Positions 15,627-54,806 of a stretch of DNA of 64,000 nucleotides are shown here, piece after piece (within the stretch, counting starts at the first letter, position 1; every line of letters starts with the position of its first letter). A program made the translations under genes and the position numbers. The stretch is from Mytilus trossulus (lineage: Eukaryota). A model generated the notes under the pieces. The model was given only the letters and a program-made list of their open reading frames with translations, searched no databases and had not been told where the DNA came from. The stretch is taken from assembly GCF_036588685.1 (NCBI RefSeq), contig NC_086385.1, forward strand, positions 2,914,001 to 2,978,000. Reading direction: 5' to 3'.

Positions 15627-17273
15627 CTCTAAATATACTTCAGAAATTTACCCAAACGAACTTACTTTAACTAAATCTAACATAAACAGCAGCAGTTGTC
15701 CTTTTCTAGATTTAGACATTTCAATTTCAAACGGGAAACTTCACACTAAAATTTACGACAAAAGAGACGATTTTTCATTTCCTATTGTTAATTTTCCTTT
15801 TTTAGACGGCGATGTGCCTTTGGCTCCATCATACGGTGTTTATATATCGCAACTCGTTTGGTTTGCCCGGGTGTGTTCTGATGTCATAGATTTTAACGAA
15901 CTTAATCAATGCATCACTGGTAAATTGTTGTGTCAGGGATTTCGATACCATAAATTACTTAAAACTTTTACTAAATTCTTTCATAGATACAAAGATTTGA
16001 TTAGTAAATTTGGCTATACCTGTAGAAAGCTTATTAAAAATGGTATATCACATCCTAAATTTTATGGTAATATTGTACTTAAAGCGAGGAAATCACTATG
16101 TGATCCTTGTAAACTCATCGAACCTTTAAACAAACTTATAAGTAAGGGTTATATATCGTACCAATATTGTAATTAGATCTCTGAATATAGTTCACATTGG
16201 CACTAATATTGATTTTGTCATTAGCAAATTAAAACATAACTAAATTTCATTATCTTTTGAGGCGAGATGTATAGGGGACACAGCCACGTTAACTTTTATT
16301 TTTATAGAAGTCGCTCTTCACTATACTACTACCTGTCGATACATTTATTTTTGGCATTGCACAAGTCATGTCTTCTTTGACTATTAATGACATTAAAATA
16401 CTAAATCCCTGTGATGTGTTTTAGTCGATTTTAGTCTCTGATGCACGATTTTTTACTATTAATTGGTTTTGGCTTTTAACTAGCTGTCAGTCATTGTCAG
16501 TAACTGGGAGTACTCTCAAATCGTATTTTCTTGTTAATTCGACCTGTTGATACTGTTTATAATGCTTTTTTGTCATTTTTTATCTATATGGATCTTGTCT
16601 GTACACCAGCTTTGATTATTTGTAATATCTTCAATTTTTCACTTATTCTTACAACATTTGTATAAACTTCAAGATTATAAAAAAACGTTTTTTTTCTAAA
16701 GTGAACATTGATTGGTTAAATATTTCTCAGTGTGTTTGAATTTCTTTGTTAGCCTTTTGGTCATGAATGTTTGTCTCTAATATTTAATTAACTGTGCATT
16801 TGTATTCAGATATCGCAGATCAAATTTATTCCTTCATTGTGTAATCATACGTTTTTTGATTGAGTTATGTCTGCCAATTGATATTTTATCGTATGTTTTT
16901 CTATGTTGTGATGTTATGCTATTGTTTCAGAAAAAGGGAAAAGGTTTGGATCCATTAAAACGTTTAATCCCGCTGCAAATGTTTGCACCTGTCCTATAAA
17001 GTCAGGAATCTGATGTACAGTAGTTGTCGTTTGTTTATGTAATATATACGTGTTTCTCGTTTCTCGTTTTGTTTATATAGATTAGACCGTTGGTTTTCCC
17101 GTTTGAATGGTTTTACACTAGTAATTTTGGGGCCCTTTATAGCTTGTTGTTCGGTGTGAGCCAAGGCTCCGTGTTGAAGGCCGTACTTTAACCTATAATG
17201 GTTTAATTTTTAAATTTTTATTTGGATGGAGAGTTGTCTCTTTGGCACTCACACCACATCTTCCTATATCTAT
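15627..17273 (+). mobile_element. 5'-truncated copy of the Naiad-type Penelope-like element (RT C-terminus, 3' UTR, terminal repeat)
   Basis: Near-identical to ~52157-53786; small indels including a frameshift near 16150; same 3' end TCCTATATCTAT; no TSD. Confidence 0.95.
16364..16450 (+). promoter_or_regulatory. SECIS element, copy 2
   Basis: GACTA-TTA-ATGA-CATTAAAATAC-TAAA-TCCCTGTGAT-GTGTTTTAGTC-GA-TTT-TAGTC: helix I, UGA/GA core, 10-bp helix II, apical AAA. Confidence 0.8.
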
Positions 17274-47057: not shown

Positions 47058-48799
47058 TATTGTTTATTTACTTATCGATGGAGATGAGTGATATATATCG
47101 AGAGGTAGTACTATGGATATCGATGATAGGTAATTTACTACACACGGTTAAACCAGTAAAAATTATGAGCAGTAAAACGAAACTTTAAAAAAGTTAAAAA
47201 ATGTCCGAGACTAAAAGAACAGATTCATTTAAAAATGTTATAAAATCTGTTAAAAGGTAAAAATAGTTCTATGGAAGTGTTGCTTATAAAGTCCGGTAAG
47301 ACAAAGACACAATAAATGTGGAGTATATATGCGTAAATATCAATTTACCAAAAAACTCAAGATGGCGTCGTCAGCAGATGCCAGTTTAACACACGATTCG
47401 TAGCTTTCCAGGTGAAATATAAAAGTTTTAATGTTCAGGTAACATGAACGATTGTTTTGGAGTAGAGGTGGTGTTAATAAAACAATGTGTATATAAAATG
47501 GTATGACTAAAACAGTAAAATAACACAGTTTTCCTCTGCAGCTAGAAAAGTGGGTCCGCCATGTTCGTCATCCGGGCAACACTCCCAAACCACAAGAGTC
47601 CCATTCGGCGCCCCGTAGTCGTAACTGGCTGCATCCAATCAAAAATCGTCTTTAACATGATCACGTGAAAATGTAAAAATGTAGGTAAACGATTACCACG
47701 TGATGAATGTGCAACAAGTCTTTTCACCTAAAAACATACGACGATATTTAGTGACAATTTAAAAATGTGTTTAATCAACTAATAGAAGTTTTCTGGGTAT
47801 TTTTCTTGCACAAATGTTTGAACGTCAAACGTCAACCCATATTTTCGTTTCCTACTGCACCAAGTTTGTAGACTCTAAATGCTATCGTGTTTTCACCTCC
47901 ACACTGAGGAGACTTCAAGTGCTCCCAATAGTCAAGAATAATGTATTTGGAATGAGCGTGTCATTAATCAAAAGATAGCAACTATAGGCTTAATATACCA
48001 AAAGTGGAGAGGAGGATAGTTGGTCGCAACCCTTGGCTAGCGAAGATACAATCCTCATGTGCCCGCCTGAAACAATATGAGTTGCTTTACCAACACTGTT
48101 TCGGTTAAGAAGGGGGTTTATCGCAAGCAAACATGTTTAATTTCGCCACATTTTCTATAGCCATTGGTCCATATGGGCGTAAAGTGCTTTTCAAATAAAA
48201 TTATAAAATTATGTACTTGTCCCAAATTAGGAGCATACAATTCAGTGTAACGTTTGTTGTTGAGTATCAAACTGTTTTCATTGGTTTTTTTTGTACTAAT
48301 CATACCGTTAGATTTCTCGTTTGAATTGTTTTACGTTTGTCCTGTTGGGGCCTTTTGCATCTGACTATGCGGTCTGGGATTTTGCTTACTTTAAATGCCG
48401 TACAGTGACCGTTTGTTTATGTCTATGTCATTTGGTCTTTGGTTGAAATTTGTCTCATTGGCATTTATACGACATCTTTGTATTTCAATATTGTGGTTTA
48501 GGACTGATTTATTAATAGGGCAACGATTTATCTTAGTCGGACTATTGGGAAACCGAACGAATTTACTCATGCGACAATGATTTATCTTAGTCGTACTATT
48601 GTTGGTGTTGAACTATATAAGGTTGTCAGACAAATTTACTATTAATGGCAGTGATAAAAATTCGTCGGCCTATAAGAATTTCAGACTAGTGTACTATGCA
48701 CTGTGTTGGAATCGATAAAACTTACAAGAATCATGTACCTCTGCTATCGCCTTTTTTAGTCCTGTGTGTGGGGGGATTCTATTTTGATTCATTTGTATG

Positions 48800-49377
48800 T
48801 TTCTAAAGTGAACATTGATTGGTTAAATATTTCTCAGCGTGTTTGAATTTGTTGATAGCCTTTTGGTCATGACTGTTTGTCTCTAATATTTAATTAACTG
48901 TGCATTTGTATTCAGATATCGCAGATCAAATTTATTCGTTCTTTGTGTAATCATACGTTTTTTGATTGAGTTAAGTCTGCTAATTGATATTTTATCGTAT
49001 GTTTTTACATGTTGTGATGTTATGCTATTGTTTCAGAAAAAGGGAGAAGGTTTGGGCCCATTAAAACGTTTAATCCCGCTGCAAATGTTTGCACCTGTCC
49101 TAAGTCAGGAATCTGATGTACAGTAGTTGTCGTTTGTTTATGTAATATATACGTGTTTCTCGTTTCTCGTTTTGTTTATATAGATTAGACCGTTGGTTTT
49201 CCCGTTTGAATGGTTTTACACTAGTAATTTTGGGGCCCTTTATAGCTTGTTGTTCGGTGTGAGCCAAGGCTCCGTGTTGAAGGCCTTACTTTAACCTATA
49301 ATGGTTTAATTTTTAAATTGTTATTTGGATGGAGAGTTGTCTCATTGGCACTCACACCACATCTTCCTATATCTATT
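48800..49377 (+). repeat. 5' pseudo-LTR
   Basis: Direct repeat of 53210-53787; I see only about two substitutions. Confidence 0.95.
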
Positions 49378-49795
49378 TACTGCAGGGTTTGTTACTCGTG
49401 CTGTGTGGATGCAGTAGAATGTGTCCCCGTGCTTGTAGTGTATGCCCTTATATATTTCAGTTATTGGTTGTTTGCCTGTGAGAGAGCTTTCACATGTTTA
49501 TATCTTTATTGTTTACGATGTTGGGATGTATTGATACTCATCCACGCCTGCTATTTTTTTTATTATTGCCCCCTGCTATGGTTTTTATTAGATTTCTTAC
49601 AACCACTGTTTTTGCCCTGTGTTTGTTACACATGTCAGTTTTGTTATATTAGTCCATACGTCGGGCCTTTTATTACAGTTTTTGTAAGAGTTCTTTACTG
49701 CACTCCTTATTATTCCTTATTCTGTAACTGTGATCCTCATTCAATGTTACAACCTCCGGTCTTTTGTATTGATCCTATACCCCTATTACATTATC

Positions 49796-52770
49796 ATGAT
49801 TTTACGGAATGGAAAAAATATTATCAACAACACAACTTCTAGGTTATCTACGTGCATAAATAAACGTATTGGTAATGCCACTACAGCCAGATTATTTAAC
49901 AAAAATGCACGTGGATATCCACAAATTTTCCCGTGCAATGCCAAAAAATGACTAACTTGTTTTAGATTAACTTCTCAAAATACTATAAGGTCAACAGTGA
50001 ACGGGAGAACCTTTTCGCTCTCCTTTTCCTGTGATATTACCTGAAAAACTCAAAACCTAATATATGTGGTAACTTGAACCCAACCTAAGTGTGGTATTCA
50101 ATATGTGGGACAGACGGGACGAGAGTATTTCAGAAGAAATCAAGAACATCTGTACCGCTTTCGTAGACCCAAAAAATTCAAAAGTTTAGTATATCAGCAT
50201 TTAGATAAGCATAATCATAATCTGAAATATATAAAATTCCAACCGCTCGAAACCGTTCAAAAACAACCAGGAGAATCACACAAGCAATTTGAAAAATCAC
50301 GCGAAGTTCGCGAATTGTTTTGGATAAAAAGACTTCAAACAGCTTATCCTCTCGGTCTAAATGATAAAATATTAGGGCAGGGGAACATATCTAAAACTCA
50401 TATCGATGTCATTAATATTGTTGATAAACGACTTAGAAATAATAGGTCTCATGGTAAACGCAAGAACCGCAATCAACGTATTAAACATCGTATAAATTAT
50501 ACACTTGCTGATCTGTTATCTATAATAAAGAATAATGGCAGACATCAAGTATTATGCAAACTGGGTCAGATACCTATAAGTGAATTATATGCTATTTTTC
50601 TTGAGTGTAATAAAATTTCTTTTTTTAGCCCATTTTATGAATACACCCGTATTATTACAGCCTTTTGTCATCACAGGCTTTTTCCTATTATTGATAAACC
50701 TGAAAATCGTAAACGACATTTTCTCAAATTAAAATATATAAATAGAGGTATTGATTTTATTAATTTGTCTAGCATATTCAATGACTCTTCTGTCTATAGC
50801 TTAATACCTCCATATTTTGATAATATAGAACAACCCATTATTTCGTATTCTTATAAAAAACCGAGCAGAAATTTGATTTTCAATTATACGTCAATTACAA
50901 CAGACGTCAATATAGAAAATAATGTTCCTTCCACTTGAGATTGCGAAACATCTAGTTTTAAATATGTTCCCTATGGTCATGTTATCACAGGAGACCTCAA
51001 CATAGTCGATGACCGTGAAGTCATAACTTTTCTAAAGAAAGGACCGAAATACCGTCCTCCTTCTACAATAGATTGGAAACAGTGTCGTCAGGTCATTAAA
51101 GACGCTCCGTCTGCCTATTGTAAAAATTGGTGCAAACGTGAAAAATCCGATAAAAAATCTTTAGACAGTTATTTGAATAAAATTATGAATACTGTTGATA
51201 TTCGAATATCTCATTTAGAAAACAATTCTGAAATTAATAATAGGAACCATGATATACCCATTTCTAGAATAAAAAACAAACTCAAGGTACTCGCAGAGCG
51301 GTTTGTGTTCGTACCGGCAGACAAGGCAGCAAATAATGTAGTGGTGGTGTGACGCATATACTACACGAAAGTTCTTCAAAACGAAATAATAAATTCCTCT
51401 ACATTCAGGTCAGTGCGCACCACAGAGAGTCAAATCGTTAACAAGCATACCACTGCCACTGCCCAGCTTAAAGCATCTTCCGAACATTTGAAAGTCCCTA
51501 CCATGTACTGGTTACCGAAATTACACAAAAAACCATTTAAATTCCGTTTCATCTCCGCTTCGAGTAAGTGTTCTACTACTAATCTATCAGTGCTTCTAAC
51601 CACCTCCCTAACTACTATCAAAGAACTGGTTATTAACTTTTGTAATAAAGCTTATGAAAATAATGGTATTAATTATTTTTGGAGTGTTAAAAATTCTTTA
51701 GAGGTTTTAGATAAAATACATGCTTTCAATGGTCCTTACAACTCTGTTGACAGTTATGATTTTTCTACTCTGTACACTACACTTCCACACAATCTTATAA
51801 AGAAAAAATTTTTTTATTTGATAAAATGGTCTTTCGAAAAATCTCATTGTAATTTTATTTGCTGTAACTCGTTTAAGGCCTTTTTATGTAACGAAAAAGG
51901 AAAGTATGCTAGATACACTTACTGGAAATGTGAGGATATGATTGAAGCTTTAAACTTTCTGCTTGATAACATTTATGTACGTTTCGGCGATAAAGTGTAT
52001 CGTCAGGTAGTAGGTATTCCTATGGGCACCAATATTGCTATGAATCTCAGTTTATGACCAAACTCAGTAAAGACCCATCATTGTTACATTTGGTTGATAC
52101 ATTCAAAAATACCTACCGTTATCTGGATGATATTTTTTCGTTGAATAATCCAGAGTTCTCTAAATATACTTCAGAAATTTACCCAAACGAACTTACTTTA
52201 ACTAAATCTAACATAAACAGCAGCAGTTGTCCTTTTCTAGATTTAGACATTTCAATTTCAAACGGGAAACTTCACACTAAAATTTACGACAAAAGAGACG
52301 ATTTTTCATTTCCTATTGTTAATTTTCCTTTTTTAGACGGCGATGTGCCTTTGGCTCCATCATACGGTGTTTATATATCGCAACTCGTTCGGTTTGCCCG
52401 TGTGTGTTCTGATGTCATAGATTTTAACGAACGTAATCAATGCATCACTGGTAAATTGTTGTGTCAGGGATTTCGATACCATAAATTACTTAAAACTTTT
52501 ACTAAATTCTTTCATAGATACAAAGATTTGATTAGTAAATTTGGCTATACCTGTAGAAAGCTTATTAAAAATGGTATTTCTCATCCTAAATTTTATGGTA
52601 ATATTGTACTTAAAGCGAGGAAATCACTATGTGATCCTTGTAAACTCATCGAACCTTTAAACAAACTTATAAGTAAGGGTTATCGTACCAATATTGTAAT
52701 TAGATCTCTGAATATAGTTCACATTGGCACTAATATTGATTTTGTCATTAGCAAATTAAAACATAACTAA
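49796..52770 (+). CDS. Putative selenocysteine-containing GIY-YIG/RT polyprotein (~1000 aa; 5 in-frame UGA; one frameshifting deletion at ~52040)
   Basis: One frame from ATG 49796 (MILRNGK) to GIPMGTN (~52041). Its only stops are TGA at 49949, 50042, 50075, 50936 and 51350, each in a Cys-type context. The frame resumes YCYESQFMTKL and ends at TAA 52768-52770. Confidence 0.85.
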
Positions 52771-52890
52771 ATTTCATTATCTTTTGAGGCGAGATGTATA
52801 GGGGACACAGCCACGTTAACTTTTATTTCTATAGAAGTCGCTCTTCACTATACTACTACCTGTCGATACATTTATTTTTGGCATTGCACA

Positions 52891-52977
52891 AGTCATGTCT
52901 TCTTTGAATATTAATGACGTTAAAATACTAAATCCCTGTGATGTGTTTTAGTCGATTTTAGTCTCTGATGCATGATT
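52891..52977 (+). promoter_or_regulatory. SECIS element in the 3' UTR
   Basis: ATGA at 52914-52917; helix II GTTAAAATAC/GTGTTTTAGT; apical AAA with mini-stem; GA at 52954-52955; outer pairing AGTCATG/CATGATT. Confidence 0.82.
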
Positions 52978-53209
52978 TTTTACTATTAATTGGTTTTGGC
53001 TTTAAACTAGCTGTCAGTAACTGCGAGTACTCTCAAATCGTATTTTCTTGTTAATTCGACCTGTTGATACTGTTTATAATGCTTTTTTGTCATTTTTTAT
53101 TTATATGGATCTTGGCTGTATACCAGCTTTGATTATTTGTAATATCTTCAATTTTTCACTTATTCTTACAACATTTGAATAAACTTCAAGATTATAAAAA
53201 AACGGTTTT

Positions 53210-53787
53210 TTTCTAAAGTGAACATTGCTTGGTTAAATATTTCTCAGCGTGTTTGAATTTGTTGATAGCCTTTTGGTCATGACTGTTTGTCTCTAATATT
53301 TAATTAACTGTGCATTTGTATTCAGATATCGCAGATCAAATTTATTCGTTCTTTGTGTAATCATACGTTTTTTGATTGAGTTAAGTCTGCTAATTGATAT
53401 TTTATCGTATGTTTTTACATGTTGTGATGTTATGCTATTGTTTCAGAAAAAGGGAGAAGGTTTGGGCCCATTAAAACGTTTAATCCCGCTGCAAATGTTT
53501 GCACCTGTCCTAAGTCAGGAATCTGATGTACAGTAGTTGTCGTTTGTTTATGTAATATATACGTGTTTCTCGTTTCTCGTTTTGTTTATATAGATTAGAC
53601 CGTTGGTTTTCCCGTTTGAATGGTTTTACACTAGTAATTTTGGGGCCCTTTATAGCTTGTTGTTCGGTGTGAGCCAAGGCTCCGTGTTGAAGGCCGTACT
53701 TTAACCTATAATGGTTTAATTTTTAAATTGTTATTTGGATGGAGAGTTGTCTCATTGGCACTCACACCACATCTTCCTATATCTATT
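53210..53787 (+). repeat. 3' pseudo-LTR
   Basis: Direct repeat of 48800-49377. Confidence 0.95.
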
Positions 53788-53810
53788 CAGATTTTAGTGT
53801 TTAGCGACCA

Positions 53811-53984
53811 CATACCCGTAGCCAGGGGGGGGGTTCGGGGGTTCGGACGACCCCCCCCCCCCCCCCCCCCCCTTGAAAACTAATAAGCACTGTTAAAGTC
53901 GATGTTCTGTTCGAATTATGACTGTTAAAGTCGAGTTTGTGAGTCAAACGAACCCCCCTTTGAAAATTTCTGGCTACGGGCCTG
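53811..53984. mobile_element. hAT-like MITE with 5-bp TSD
   Basis: TIR CATACCCGTAGCCAG / CTGGCTACGGGCCTG; TSD GACCA at 53806-53810 and 53985-53989; internal G and C tracts. Confidence 0.8.
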
Positions 53985-54806
53985 GACCATTTAGCTGAAA
54001 CTAGTATACATTTTTGTTTAGGGGCCAGTTGAAGCCCACCTAGCGGAGTTTGCTCGCTACGTTAAAAACCCATTCATGTGTTATTTTCTGCACTTTGATC
54101 GTCTTGTTGTCTCTTTAAGGGGACTCGCGGGTATAAATCAACATTTATTTTTAATATGAGATTTCGCTATATTTTTTTTATAAAAAACTAAATGAAATAA
54201 AAAAAATGGGGTCACCGTTTATTCAAGCTCACAATCTGCCTCCGAAAGAAGCATACATTTTTGTTATTGCCCTTTTTTTCAGTTGAACTAATAGAAGAAA
54301 TAGAGGTAATATCGAAAGAAGAAAAGTACTAAATGACAGAAATTGTTTTAATTTTACAATTATTTAGTTTATGTACGGCTTATTTGAAAACAATAATAAA
54401 AATATAGGTCACTGATGAGTTAAATGCCAAAAATGGCATTTTTGCACCAAAGGGAGATAATTTGGAGCTTTTTCAATTAAATAAAAATTGTAAAAGTCAT
54501 CTGGGGCCAAACCAAATCTATTTTTTTGGTTGATTGTTGTACCAGATCATAAAGTAATAACTAATCATGTAATAAATAAAATTTGTAATGTAAAAACAAA
54601 TGTTTAAATTTTCGCTGAATTTTGTATAGACGCGAAAGGTCTCTGGAATAATACGACAAGTTTTGTATTCAAAACGAAAATACTAAATAATAAAATATGT
54701 AGATATACACGACATACACTAATAAGACATTAACACAACATTAATAATTACCAAGACAGAATCCAACATAATTATGTCCACACAATATGTCAAGCTCGTA
54801 ATGAAA

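Follow-up and report, generated by a model that had tools for sequence, protein, structure and literature searches.

A Naiad-type Penelope-like retrotransposon family of Mytilus trossulus with five in-frame UGA codons predicted to be read as selenocysteine

Introduction

Naiads are Penelope-like retrotransposons described by Craig et al. in 2021 (PMC8557442). They are defined by the motifs CX2-5CxxC and CCHH, a KR-rich block, a CxC linker, GxKF/Y, and DKA replacing DKG. Four Naiad families, two from clams and two from spiders, code for selenocysteine (Sec). Each of them has three to four UGA codons and a selenocysteine insertion sequence (SECIS) located 1-21 nt after the stop codon, and the cysteine eight residues after DKA is a Sec position in all four (PMC8557442). 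The Sec-coding Naiads of the spider genus Stegodyphus lack the IFD, an insertion between RT3(A) and RT4(B), and arose independently (PMC8557442). Naiads were described without hammerhead ribozymes. A literature search for later work on Sec-coding Naiads, published after Craig et al. 2021, found none. Here we describe a Naiad-type Penelope-like unit of 4410 nt in a 64,000-nt stretch of the Mytilus trossulus genome, which we call the window (GCF_036588685.1, NC_086385.1, positions 2,914,001-2,978,000, forward strand). The unit occupies 49378-53787 on the plus strand; all coordinates are window-based. A first-pass annotation, made from the sequence of the window alone, had proposed that UGA codons at Cys sites of this element are recoded as Sec. 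Our analysis suggests that the intact family very probably encodes a single endonuclease-reverse transcriptase of 1001 residues with five Sec, produced by SECIS-driven recoding of UGA, and that the window copy itself is defective.

Results

In the reading frame starting with the ATG at 49796, TGA occurs exactly five times (at 49949, 50042, 50075, 50936 and 51350), and TAA and TAG are absent as far as 52039, in agreement with the first-pass annotation. The open reading frame (ORF) pieces starting at 49730, 50105 and 51413, which it had assigned to one frame, do share that frame, and the peptide contexts quoted for them are exact by translation. The five TGA are the sole interruptions of the first part of the ORF (49796-52032, plus strand, codons 1-745). 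Its translation comprises an N-terminal GIY-YIG endonuclease, a KR-rich block, a CxC linker, the DKA motif and the first half of the reverse transcriptase (RT). Motif mapping placed the KR block at codons 211-232, the linker as U381-D-C383 (U denotes Sec), GPKY at 416-419 and DKA at 509-511. Two zinc-finger-like motifs of the Mytilus family, C47-x4-U52-xx-C55 and U94-x4-C99 followed by histidines, contain one predicted Sec position each. The second part (52033-52770, plus strand; ORF 52054-52770) corresponds to the second half of the RT and the thumb, is frame-shifted by a deletion, and ends with the TAA at 52768-52770. Pfam searches with the ORF pieces of the window gave no endonuclease match and only a weak match to RVT_1, and the domain assignment was taken from Cys-type homologues. 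Codons 83-107 align with the GIY-YIG core of homologues which score above the cut-off for PF01541 upstream of RVT_1, in agreement with the earlier suggestion of a Naiad with an N-terminal GIY-YIG.

Homologues were searched with the ORF pieces using HMMER and a word-based method, which yielded thousands of relatives. The first-pass annotation had recommended an alignment to Cys-type Naiads, and in the full-length Cys-type proteins (900-1100 aa, with Pfam GIY-YIG upstream of RVT_1) all five TGA columns are indeed occupied by Cys. At the DNA level, the X-masked protein was used to read 111 related loci, which came from public metagenomes of marine origin and host-contaminated metagenome-assembled genomes (MAGs). 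The in-frame stops at the five columns amounted to 118 TGA, 0 TAA and 0 TAG; outside these columns, 18 TGA, 16 TAA and 4 TAG were counted. In an RT tree of 82 rows, built with the four published Sec-Naiad families left out, every TGA-bearing locus is located on one side of a branch with an SH-aLRT support of 100, and the other side is entirely of the Cys type. In the following, the loci on the two sides are referred to as the clade and the outsiders.

The five sites, all on the plus strand, differ in how often they carry TGA. TGA 1 (49949-49951, codon 52) corresponds to the second Cys of C-x4-C-xx-C; 7 clade loci have U and 15 have C here, and 13 of 13 outsiders have C. TGA 2 (50042-50044, codon 83) replaces the Cys just before the GIY-YIG core (clade U 20, C 4; outsiders C 14/14), and TGA 3 (50075-50077, codon 94) the first Cys of CCHH inside this core (clade U 22, C 2; outsiders C 15/15). 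The first Cys of the diagnostic CxC is the position of TGA 4 (50936-50938, codon 381); 20 clade loci have U and 16 have C there, and the site has switched between Cys and Sec at least nine times on the tree. TGA 5 (51350-51352, codon 519) lies at the Cys eight residues after DKA (clade U 37, C 6; outsiders C 41/41). TGA never replaces the partner cysteines 47, 55, 99 and 383, and at the 28 other reference Cys columns TGA accounts for 2 of the 576 Cys-or-TGA codons in the clade. Relatives with less than ~45% identity carry TGT or TGC at every site, and closer relatives are mosaics such as C-U-U-U-U, U-U-U-C-U, C-U-U-C-U or C-C-C-C-U. All five TGA are found in two lineages which are only 46-47% identical to the Mytilus family. 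Among the database proteins, 54 cluster representatives stop exactly one residue ahead of column 381 and 43 matches begin just after column 519, as would be expected of gene callers meeting a stop there.

Some Naiad copies, part of them of the Sec type, are located on contigs whose database entries are bacterial genomes or MAGs (L123-L125, L126, L127, L130, L147). The Naiads in bins of bivalve symbionts and in isolates such as a Paenibacillus are evidently host or sample contamination.

A SECIS hairpin is located in the 3' untranslated region (UTR) at 52890-52978 (plus strand), with AUGA at 52914-52917, AAA at 52930-52932 and GA at 52954-52955. Its minimum free energy corresponds to z = -2.3, and it reaches 65.1 bits with the clade-specific model R1. 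The AUGA lies 144 nt after the TAA and the model match begins ~135 nt after the stop. The canonical SECIS that had been proposed ~140 nt past the TAA was found in place, although its score with the Rfam model SECIS_1 is below the gathering score. SECIS_1 matched just after the ORFs of 7 of 14 Sec-type loci (27-32 bits) and of 0 of 15 Cys-type loci. In an alignment of six of the matched hairpins, ATGA, AAA and GAT do not vary. The hairpins fold into helix I, an internal loop, a helix II of 11 bp and a small stem at the apex. From these six a covariance model of the clade was built and applied to loci with at least 150 nt downstream of the ORF. On the plus strand after the ORF it matched 28 of 32 clade loci versus 0 of 36 outsiders; in four loci of the Sec clade with enough downstream sequence a SECIS was not found, one of these counts being an artefact caused by a second partial copy. 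One additional contig ends exactly at an AUGA.

The hairpin is also supported by covariation. In 30 distinct sequences, 88% of the cells were paired, compared to 62% after shuffling and 40-48% when the partners were slid, a gap which is large even though the alignment was fitted to the model and is thus biased toward the structure. Compensatory changes were detected at 18 of 19 SECIS pairs. The SECIS of most lineages begins right at the stop codon, and in the subclade of the Mytilus family the model match begins 54-58 nt downstream. The apical stem of the Mytilus family is weak, so that AAA may lie in an open loop. Each unit has a single detected SECIS, and its sequence is identical in 22 of the 30 genomic copies described below.

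These features bear on the question whether a near-cognate tRNA (for Trp, Cys or Arg) could read through the UGA codons, or whether they are recoded in another way, the hairpin then having some other role, for example in RNA stability or recognition by the RT. W is present at some of the five columns in certain database gene calls, as near-cognate decoding would have it; most likely, however, this W is TGA read by gene callers with a UGA=Trp table. Known stimulators of read-through are located immediately 3' of the stop, and the hairpin is 1.6-3 kb away from the UGA codons. Further, the eukaryotic SECIS letters AUGA, AAA and GA and the helix lengths are kept while the stems covary, and the sites are exclusively Cys columns, which is the classic pattern of Cys/Sec homologues. 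We consider such a read-through very unlikely and Sec the far better candidate for the inserted residue.

The genome searched (1.30 Gb, 541 contigs, 14 of them chromosome-sized) gave more than 5600 first-look candidates. The window copy and 29 others, which show 98-99% identity, were fetched (n=30), and fixation was judged by codon tallies per site over these natural copies. TGA is present at sites 1 to 5 in 28, 30, 29, 30 and 30 of the 30 copies, respectively. The exceptions are TTA (two copies, site 1) and TCA (one copy, site 3). TGT, TGC or TGG, named in the first-pass annotation as codons that would speak against recoding, never occurred. This shows that the source element carried the five TGA; fixation among copies alone is no demonstration of recoding. 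The frame of ~1000 codons with exactly five TGA and the TAA stop is intact in 9 of the 26 other 5'-complete copies, and the remaining ones gained TAA, TAG, extra TGA or frameshifts elsewhere. Since the 3' flank is different at every copy, the copies are independent insertions. The family is abundant and apparently active.

Selection was analyzed by the Nei-Gojobori method for pairs of clade members, in four segments before, between and after the TGAs, using only pairs with unsaturated dS. For these pairs dN/dS was 0.03-0.24 in every segment, and thus the whole frame is maintained as one protein across the UGAs. The pair L067/L080 has kept all five TGA at a dS of ~0.7-1.1. Purifying selection on every ORF segment led us to reject the pseudogene reading.

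A related explanation would be that the five TGA arose in a defective master by ordinary nonsense mutation, that its non-autonomous family depends on Cys-type Naiads for copying in trans, and that the hairpin resembles a SECIS by chance. The 30 copies are so alike that their fixed codons reflect the state of the source copy only, the window copy is demonstrably dead, and its SECIS_1 score is under threshold, all of which would fit. However, relatives with 46-63% identity keep TGA at the same columns in a frame otherwise open over ~1000 codons, and the low dN/dS persists downstream of every TGA. TGA is confined to 5 of 33 Cys-type columns (the 28 reference Cys columns and the five), TAA and TAG never occur there, and it is accompanied by the covarying hairpin within the clade and not among the outsiders. 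In view of this, a nonsense origin of the five codons is hardly credible, and we retain recoding as Sec.

The minimum number of changes within the clade at sites 52, 83, 94, 381 and 519 is 2, 3, 3, 9 and 3, respectively, and such multiple changes per site imply repeated Cys/Sec exchange. The number of UGA codons per clade member varies from one to five. The first-pass annotation had considered an unreported lineage or an independent origin. The former holds in so far as the Mytilus family is new; an independent origin in mussels is unsupported in this sample, as the family nests inside the one well-supported Sec clade. Two relatives have an extra TGA in common, which is at codon 921, in the thumb region, and not in RT6(D); it does not mark them as members of the published razor-clam family.

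The repeated exchange leaves room for the idea that Sec is inserted but kept for dosage. In this case five inefficient recoding events would throttle the endonuclease (EN)-RT or limit it to tissues or conditions with high Sec decoding, and transposition would be self-limiting. The variable number of UGA codons and the repeated switching of sites, above all of site 381, suggest that Cys and Sec are functionally nearly interchangeable, which speaks for this idea. On the other hand, only five particular cysteines become TGA and their motif partners never do, which argues for a position-specific chemical role. We regard dosage control as possible, though on balance somewhat unlikely, as the reason for keeping Sec in this protein.

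The window copy differs from all others by a private deletion of 31 nt at 52032 (between 52032 and 52033, plus strand; 1 of 30 copies), within the RT motif after GIPMGTN. The codons for NCAPLIADLF are removed and the frame is shifted, so that the final 238 codons (52054-52770) are in another frame than that of the ATG at 49796. The second ORF part is 100% identical to codons 757-1001 of copies without the deletion, and the 31 missing letters are present in contigs from four sequencing libraries (RNA and DNA). Because of this frameshift, the TGA that ends the 51413 ORF piece is not a sixth recoding site. The first-pass annotation had overlooked the deletion; the copy is dead and would not code for a working RT.

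At 48800-53787 a partial copy is followed head to tail by the full unit, which is the typical pseudo-LTR (long terminal repeat) layout of Penelope-like elements. The pseudo-LTR (48800-49377, plus strand) is a 5'-truncated upstream tandem copy of the final 578 nt of the element and pairs with 53210-53787 at an offset of 4410, with two mismatches; the near-identity noted at first pass was therefore correct. The full unit begins at 49378, a boundary common to the genomic copies, several of which are 5'-truncated elsewhere, and its 5'-UTR extends to 49795 (plus strand). Downstream of the SECIS lie the remaining 3'-UTR and the tail (52979-53787, plus strand); the unit ends at 53787, beyond which the flank differs in every copy. 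Window 49378-53787 is a recently inserted, defective copy of a Mytilus Naiad-type Penelope-like retrotransposon. Among the genomic copies, the upstream partial copies range from 60 to more than 1080 nt and are joined head to tail at one common junction, and many copies are 5'-truncated at differing points. When the (TA)n insertion bias of Naiads was checked, the 3' flanks of 29 copies were AT-rich and not (TA)n, and loose read ends were AT-rich as well. Hammerhead families gave no match at E <= 10 in 48500-54500.

Several further repeats and weak matches were observed in and around the element. The final ~440 nt (53347-53787) are 100 to more than 80,000 times deeper than the ORF in every library, and this tail is common to very many truncated copies or related repeats. 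A 52-nt sequence with 75% similarity to the tail end is also present at 48438-48489. The type-P1 twister ribozyme model, with a gathering score of 67, gave faint matches in the 3' tail of the element, at 53477-53539 (14.4 bits), and in that of a relative (L078:4555-4618, 24.1 bits). Directly 3' of the element, at 53800-53870, there is a perfect GC hairpin (a G-run followed by a C-run), which is the source of spurious matches to miRNA families.

A second, 5'-truncated copy at 15627-17273 of the window is 97% identical and comprises the last 1647 nt of the unit, with a SECIS at 16373-16444 (59.4 bits). Another family in the same genome has frames of 905 aa with one TGA in the matched region. In a genome-wide search with the Naiad SECIS model, all 150 scored candidates reached 55-76 bits and were distributed over all chromosomes, most of them outscoring the SECIS of the window family. 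From this we conclude that the genome contains more than one Sec-Naiad family, in fact several, and that at least 150 SECIS elements are dispersed in it.

As for the host machinery, the genome contains two tRNA-Sec genes above the Rfam cut-off (79.6 and 77 bits). A tandem array with a period of ~890-900 nt was also noticed (G000:C10:63843916-64492367), each unit of which reaches 45.9 bits on the tRNA-Sec model, just below the cut-off. The array probably consists of another long-arm tRNA or of a repeat derived from a tRNA. RefSeq proteins from Mytilus edulis (98% identity) and M. californianus fall into the 90%-identity cluster of the RT fragment, which identifies the host as a Mytilus mussel. 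Both entries are named 'uncharacterized protein' and begin after the last UGA. As predicted at first pass, standard annotation discards the element and keeps such fragments only.

Discussion

The proposal that UGA at Cys sites is recoded as Sec is strengthened by fixed TGA codons at Cys columns, a single clade combining TGA with SECIS, covariation of the hairpin, purifying selection and the presence of tRNA-Sec. We suggest that the mRNA of the element carries a single SECIS hairpin in its 3'-UTR, which would recruit the Sec-insertion machinery of the host (SBP2, eEFSec and Sec-tRNA). The UGA codons 52, 83, 94, 381 and 519 would then be decoded as Sec rather than as stop, and the five Sec would stand in for cysteines of CX4CxxC, the position before GIY-YIG, CCHH, CxC and the position eight residues after DKA. 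By endonuclease-nicked, target-primed reverse transcription the protein would insert new copies, a process that would also yield the 5'-truncated copies and the partial tandems forming the pseudo-LTRs. That Sec is actually inserted, and to what purpose, we infer from comparative data. It is tempting to speculate that transposition is thereby linked to the selenium supply of the host.

Several observations weigh against this explanation. Support at the RNA level is weak. Raw RNA-seq reads cover the ORF to a depth of no more than 2.7, on both strands; contigs from RNA libraries span most of the ORF and possibly represent DNA carry-over. Rfam SECIS_1 matches 52903-52968 with 22.1 bits at a gathering score of 35, and the covariation was measured in the structure-biased alignment mentioned above. 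A single SECIS must serve five UGA codons, which are up to 3 kb away. Finally, the window copy is unable to make the protein.

A wider evolutionary scenario, which we consider rather unlikely, would start with a single early origin of Sec in a large bivalve Naiad clade. Five cysteines of putative metal-binding or redox motifs would toggle between Cys and Sec, with five Sec in at least two lineages, for adaptive reasons such as a selenium- or redox-dependent activity of the EN or RT, and dispersed copies would scatter working SECIS. If this is true, new selenoproteins of the host could arise from the dispersed 5'-truncated copies, which number in the hundreds to thousands.

The Sec clade can be regarded as a natural experiment in repeated Cys/Sec exchange at defined sites of an enzyme. 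An abundant family and at least 150 SECIS remain invisible to normal pipelines, because annotation cuts the ORFs at UGA.

Sec-coding transposons are known from a single paper of 2021. They appear to thrive in Mytilus as well, with the highest Sec count so far. The Mytilus family shows pseudo-LTRs from partial tandems, 5' truncation and a unit of 4410 nt (the Naiad body is 3.4-4.4 kb). Judged by sequence, it has every Naiad feature for which a clear result was obtained, together with the computational hallmarks of a selenoprotein gene. Cys-type Naiads (P0157, P0162, P0167, P0244; 900-1100 aa) share with it GIY-YIG, the KR block, CxC, DKA and RT, but they have TGT or TGC in place of TGA, and a SECIS downstream was found in 0 of 36 loci. 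Another comparison is Selenoprotein P, in which one mRNA contains many UGA codons decoded processively as Sec, as predicted for Mytilus; molluscan Selenoprotein P has up to 132 UGA according to work cited in PMC8557442. In contrast to the mobile-element enzyme of Mytilus with its one detectable SECIS, Selenoprotein P is a selenium-transport protein of the host and has two SECIS.

The closest described systems are the clam Sec-Naiads (PMC8557442), which like the Mytilus family have UGA before GIY-YIG, at the first Cys of CCHH and at the Cys eight residues after DKA, and a SECIS in the 3'-UTR. Compared by published description, the Mytilus family differs from them in having five UGA instead of 3-4, the extra ones falling on the second Cys of CX4CxxC and on the first one of CxC, and in its SECIS match ~135 nt after the stop instead of 1-21 nt. 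The spider families Naiad_Sdum and Naiad_Smim (Stegodyphus) have UGA at CX2-5CxxC (at both Cys in Sdum), before GIY-YIG and after DKA, as does the Mytilus family, but they reside in arthropod hosts and lack UGA in CCHH and CxC. Sec at CxC is not listed for the four published families. What would be new in the Mytilus family is therefore the host genus, the number of five UGA, the predicted Sec at CxC and, for a bivalve, at CX4CxxC, and the distal SECIS. The comparative data suggest that the known families are not separate curiosities but the outermost branches of a single large clade.

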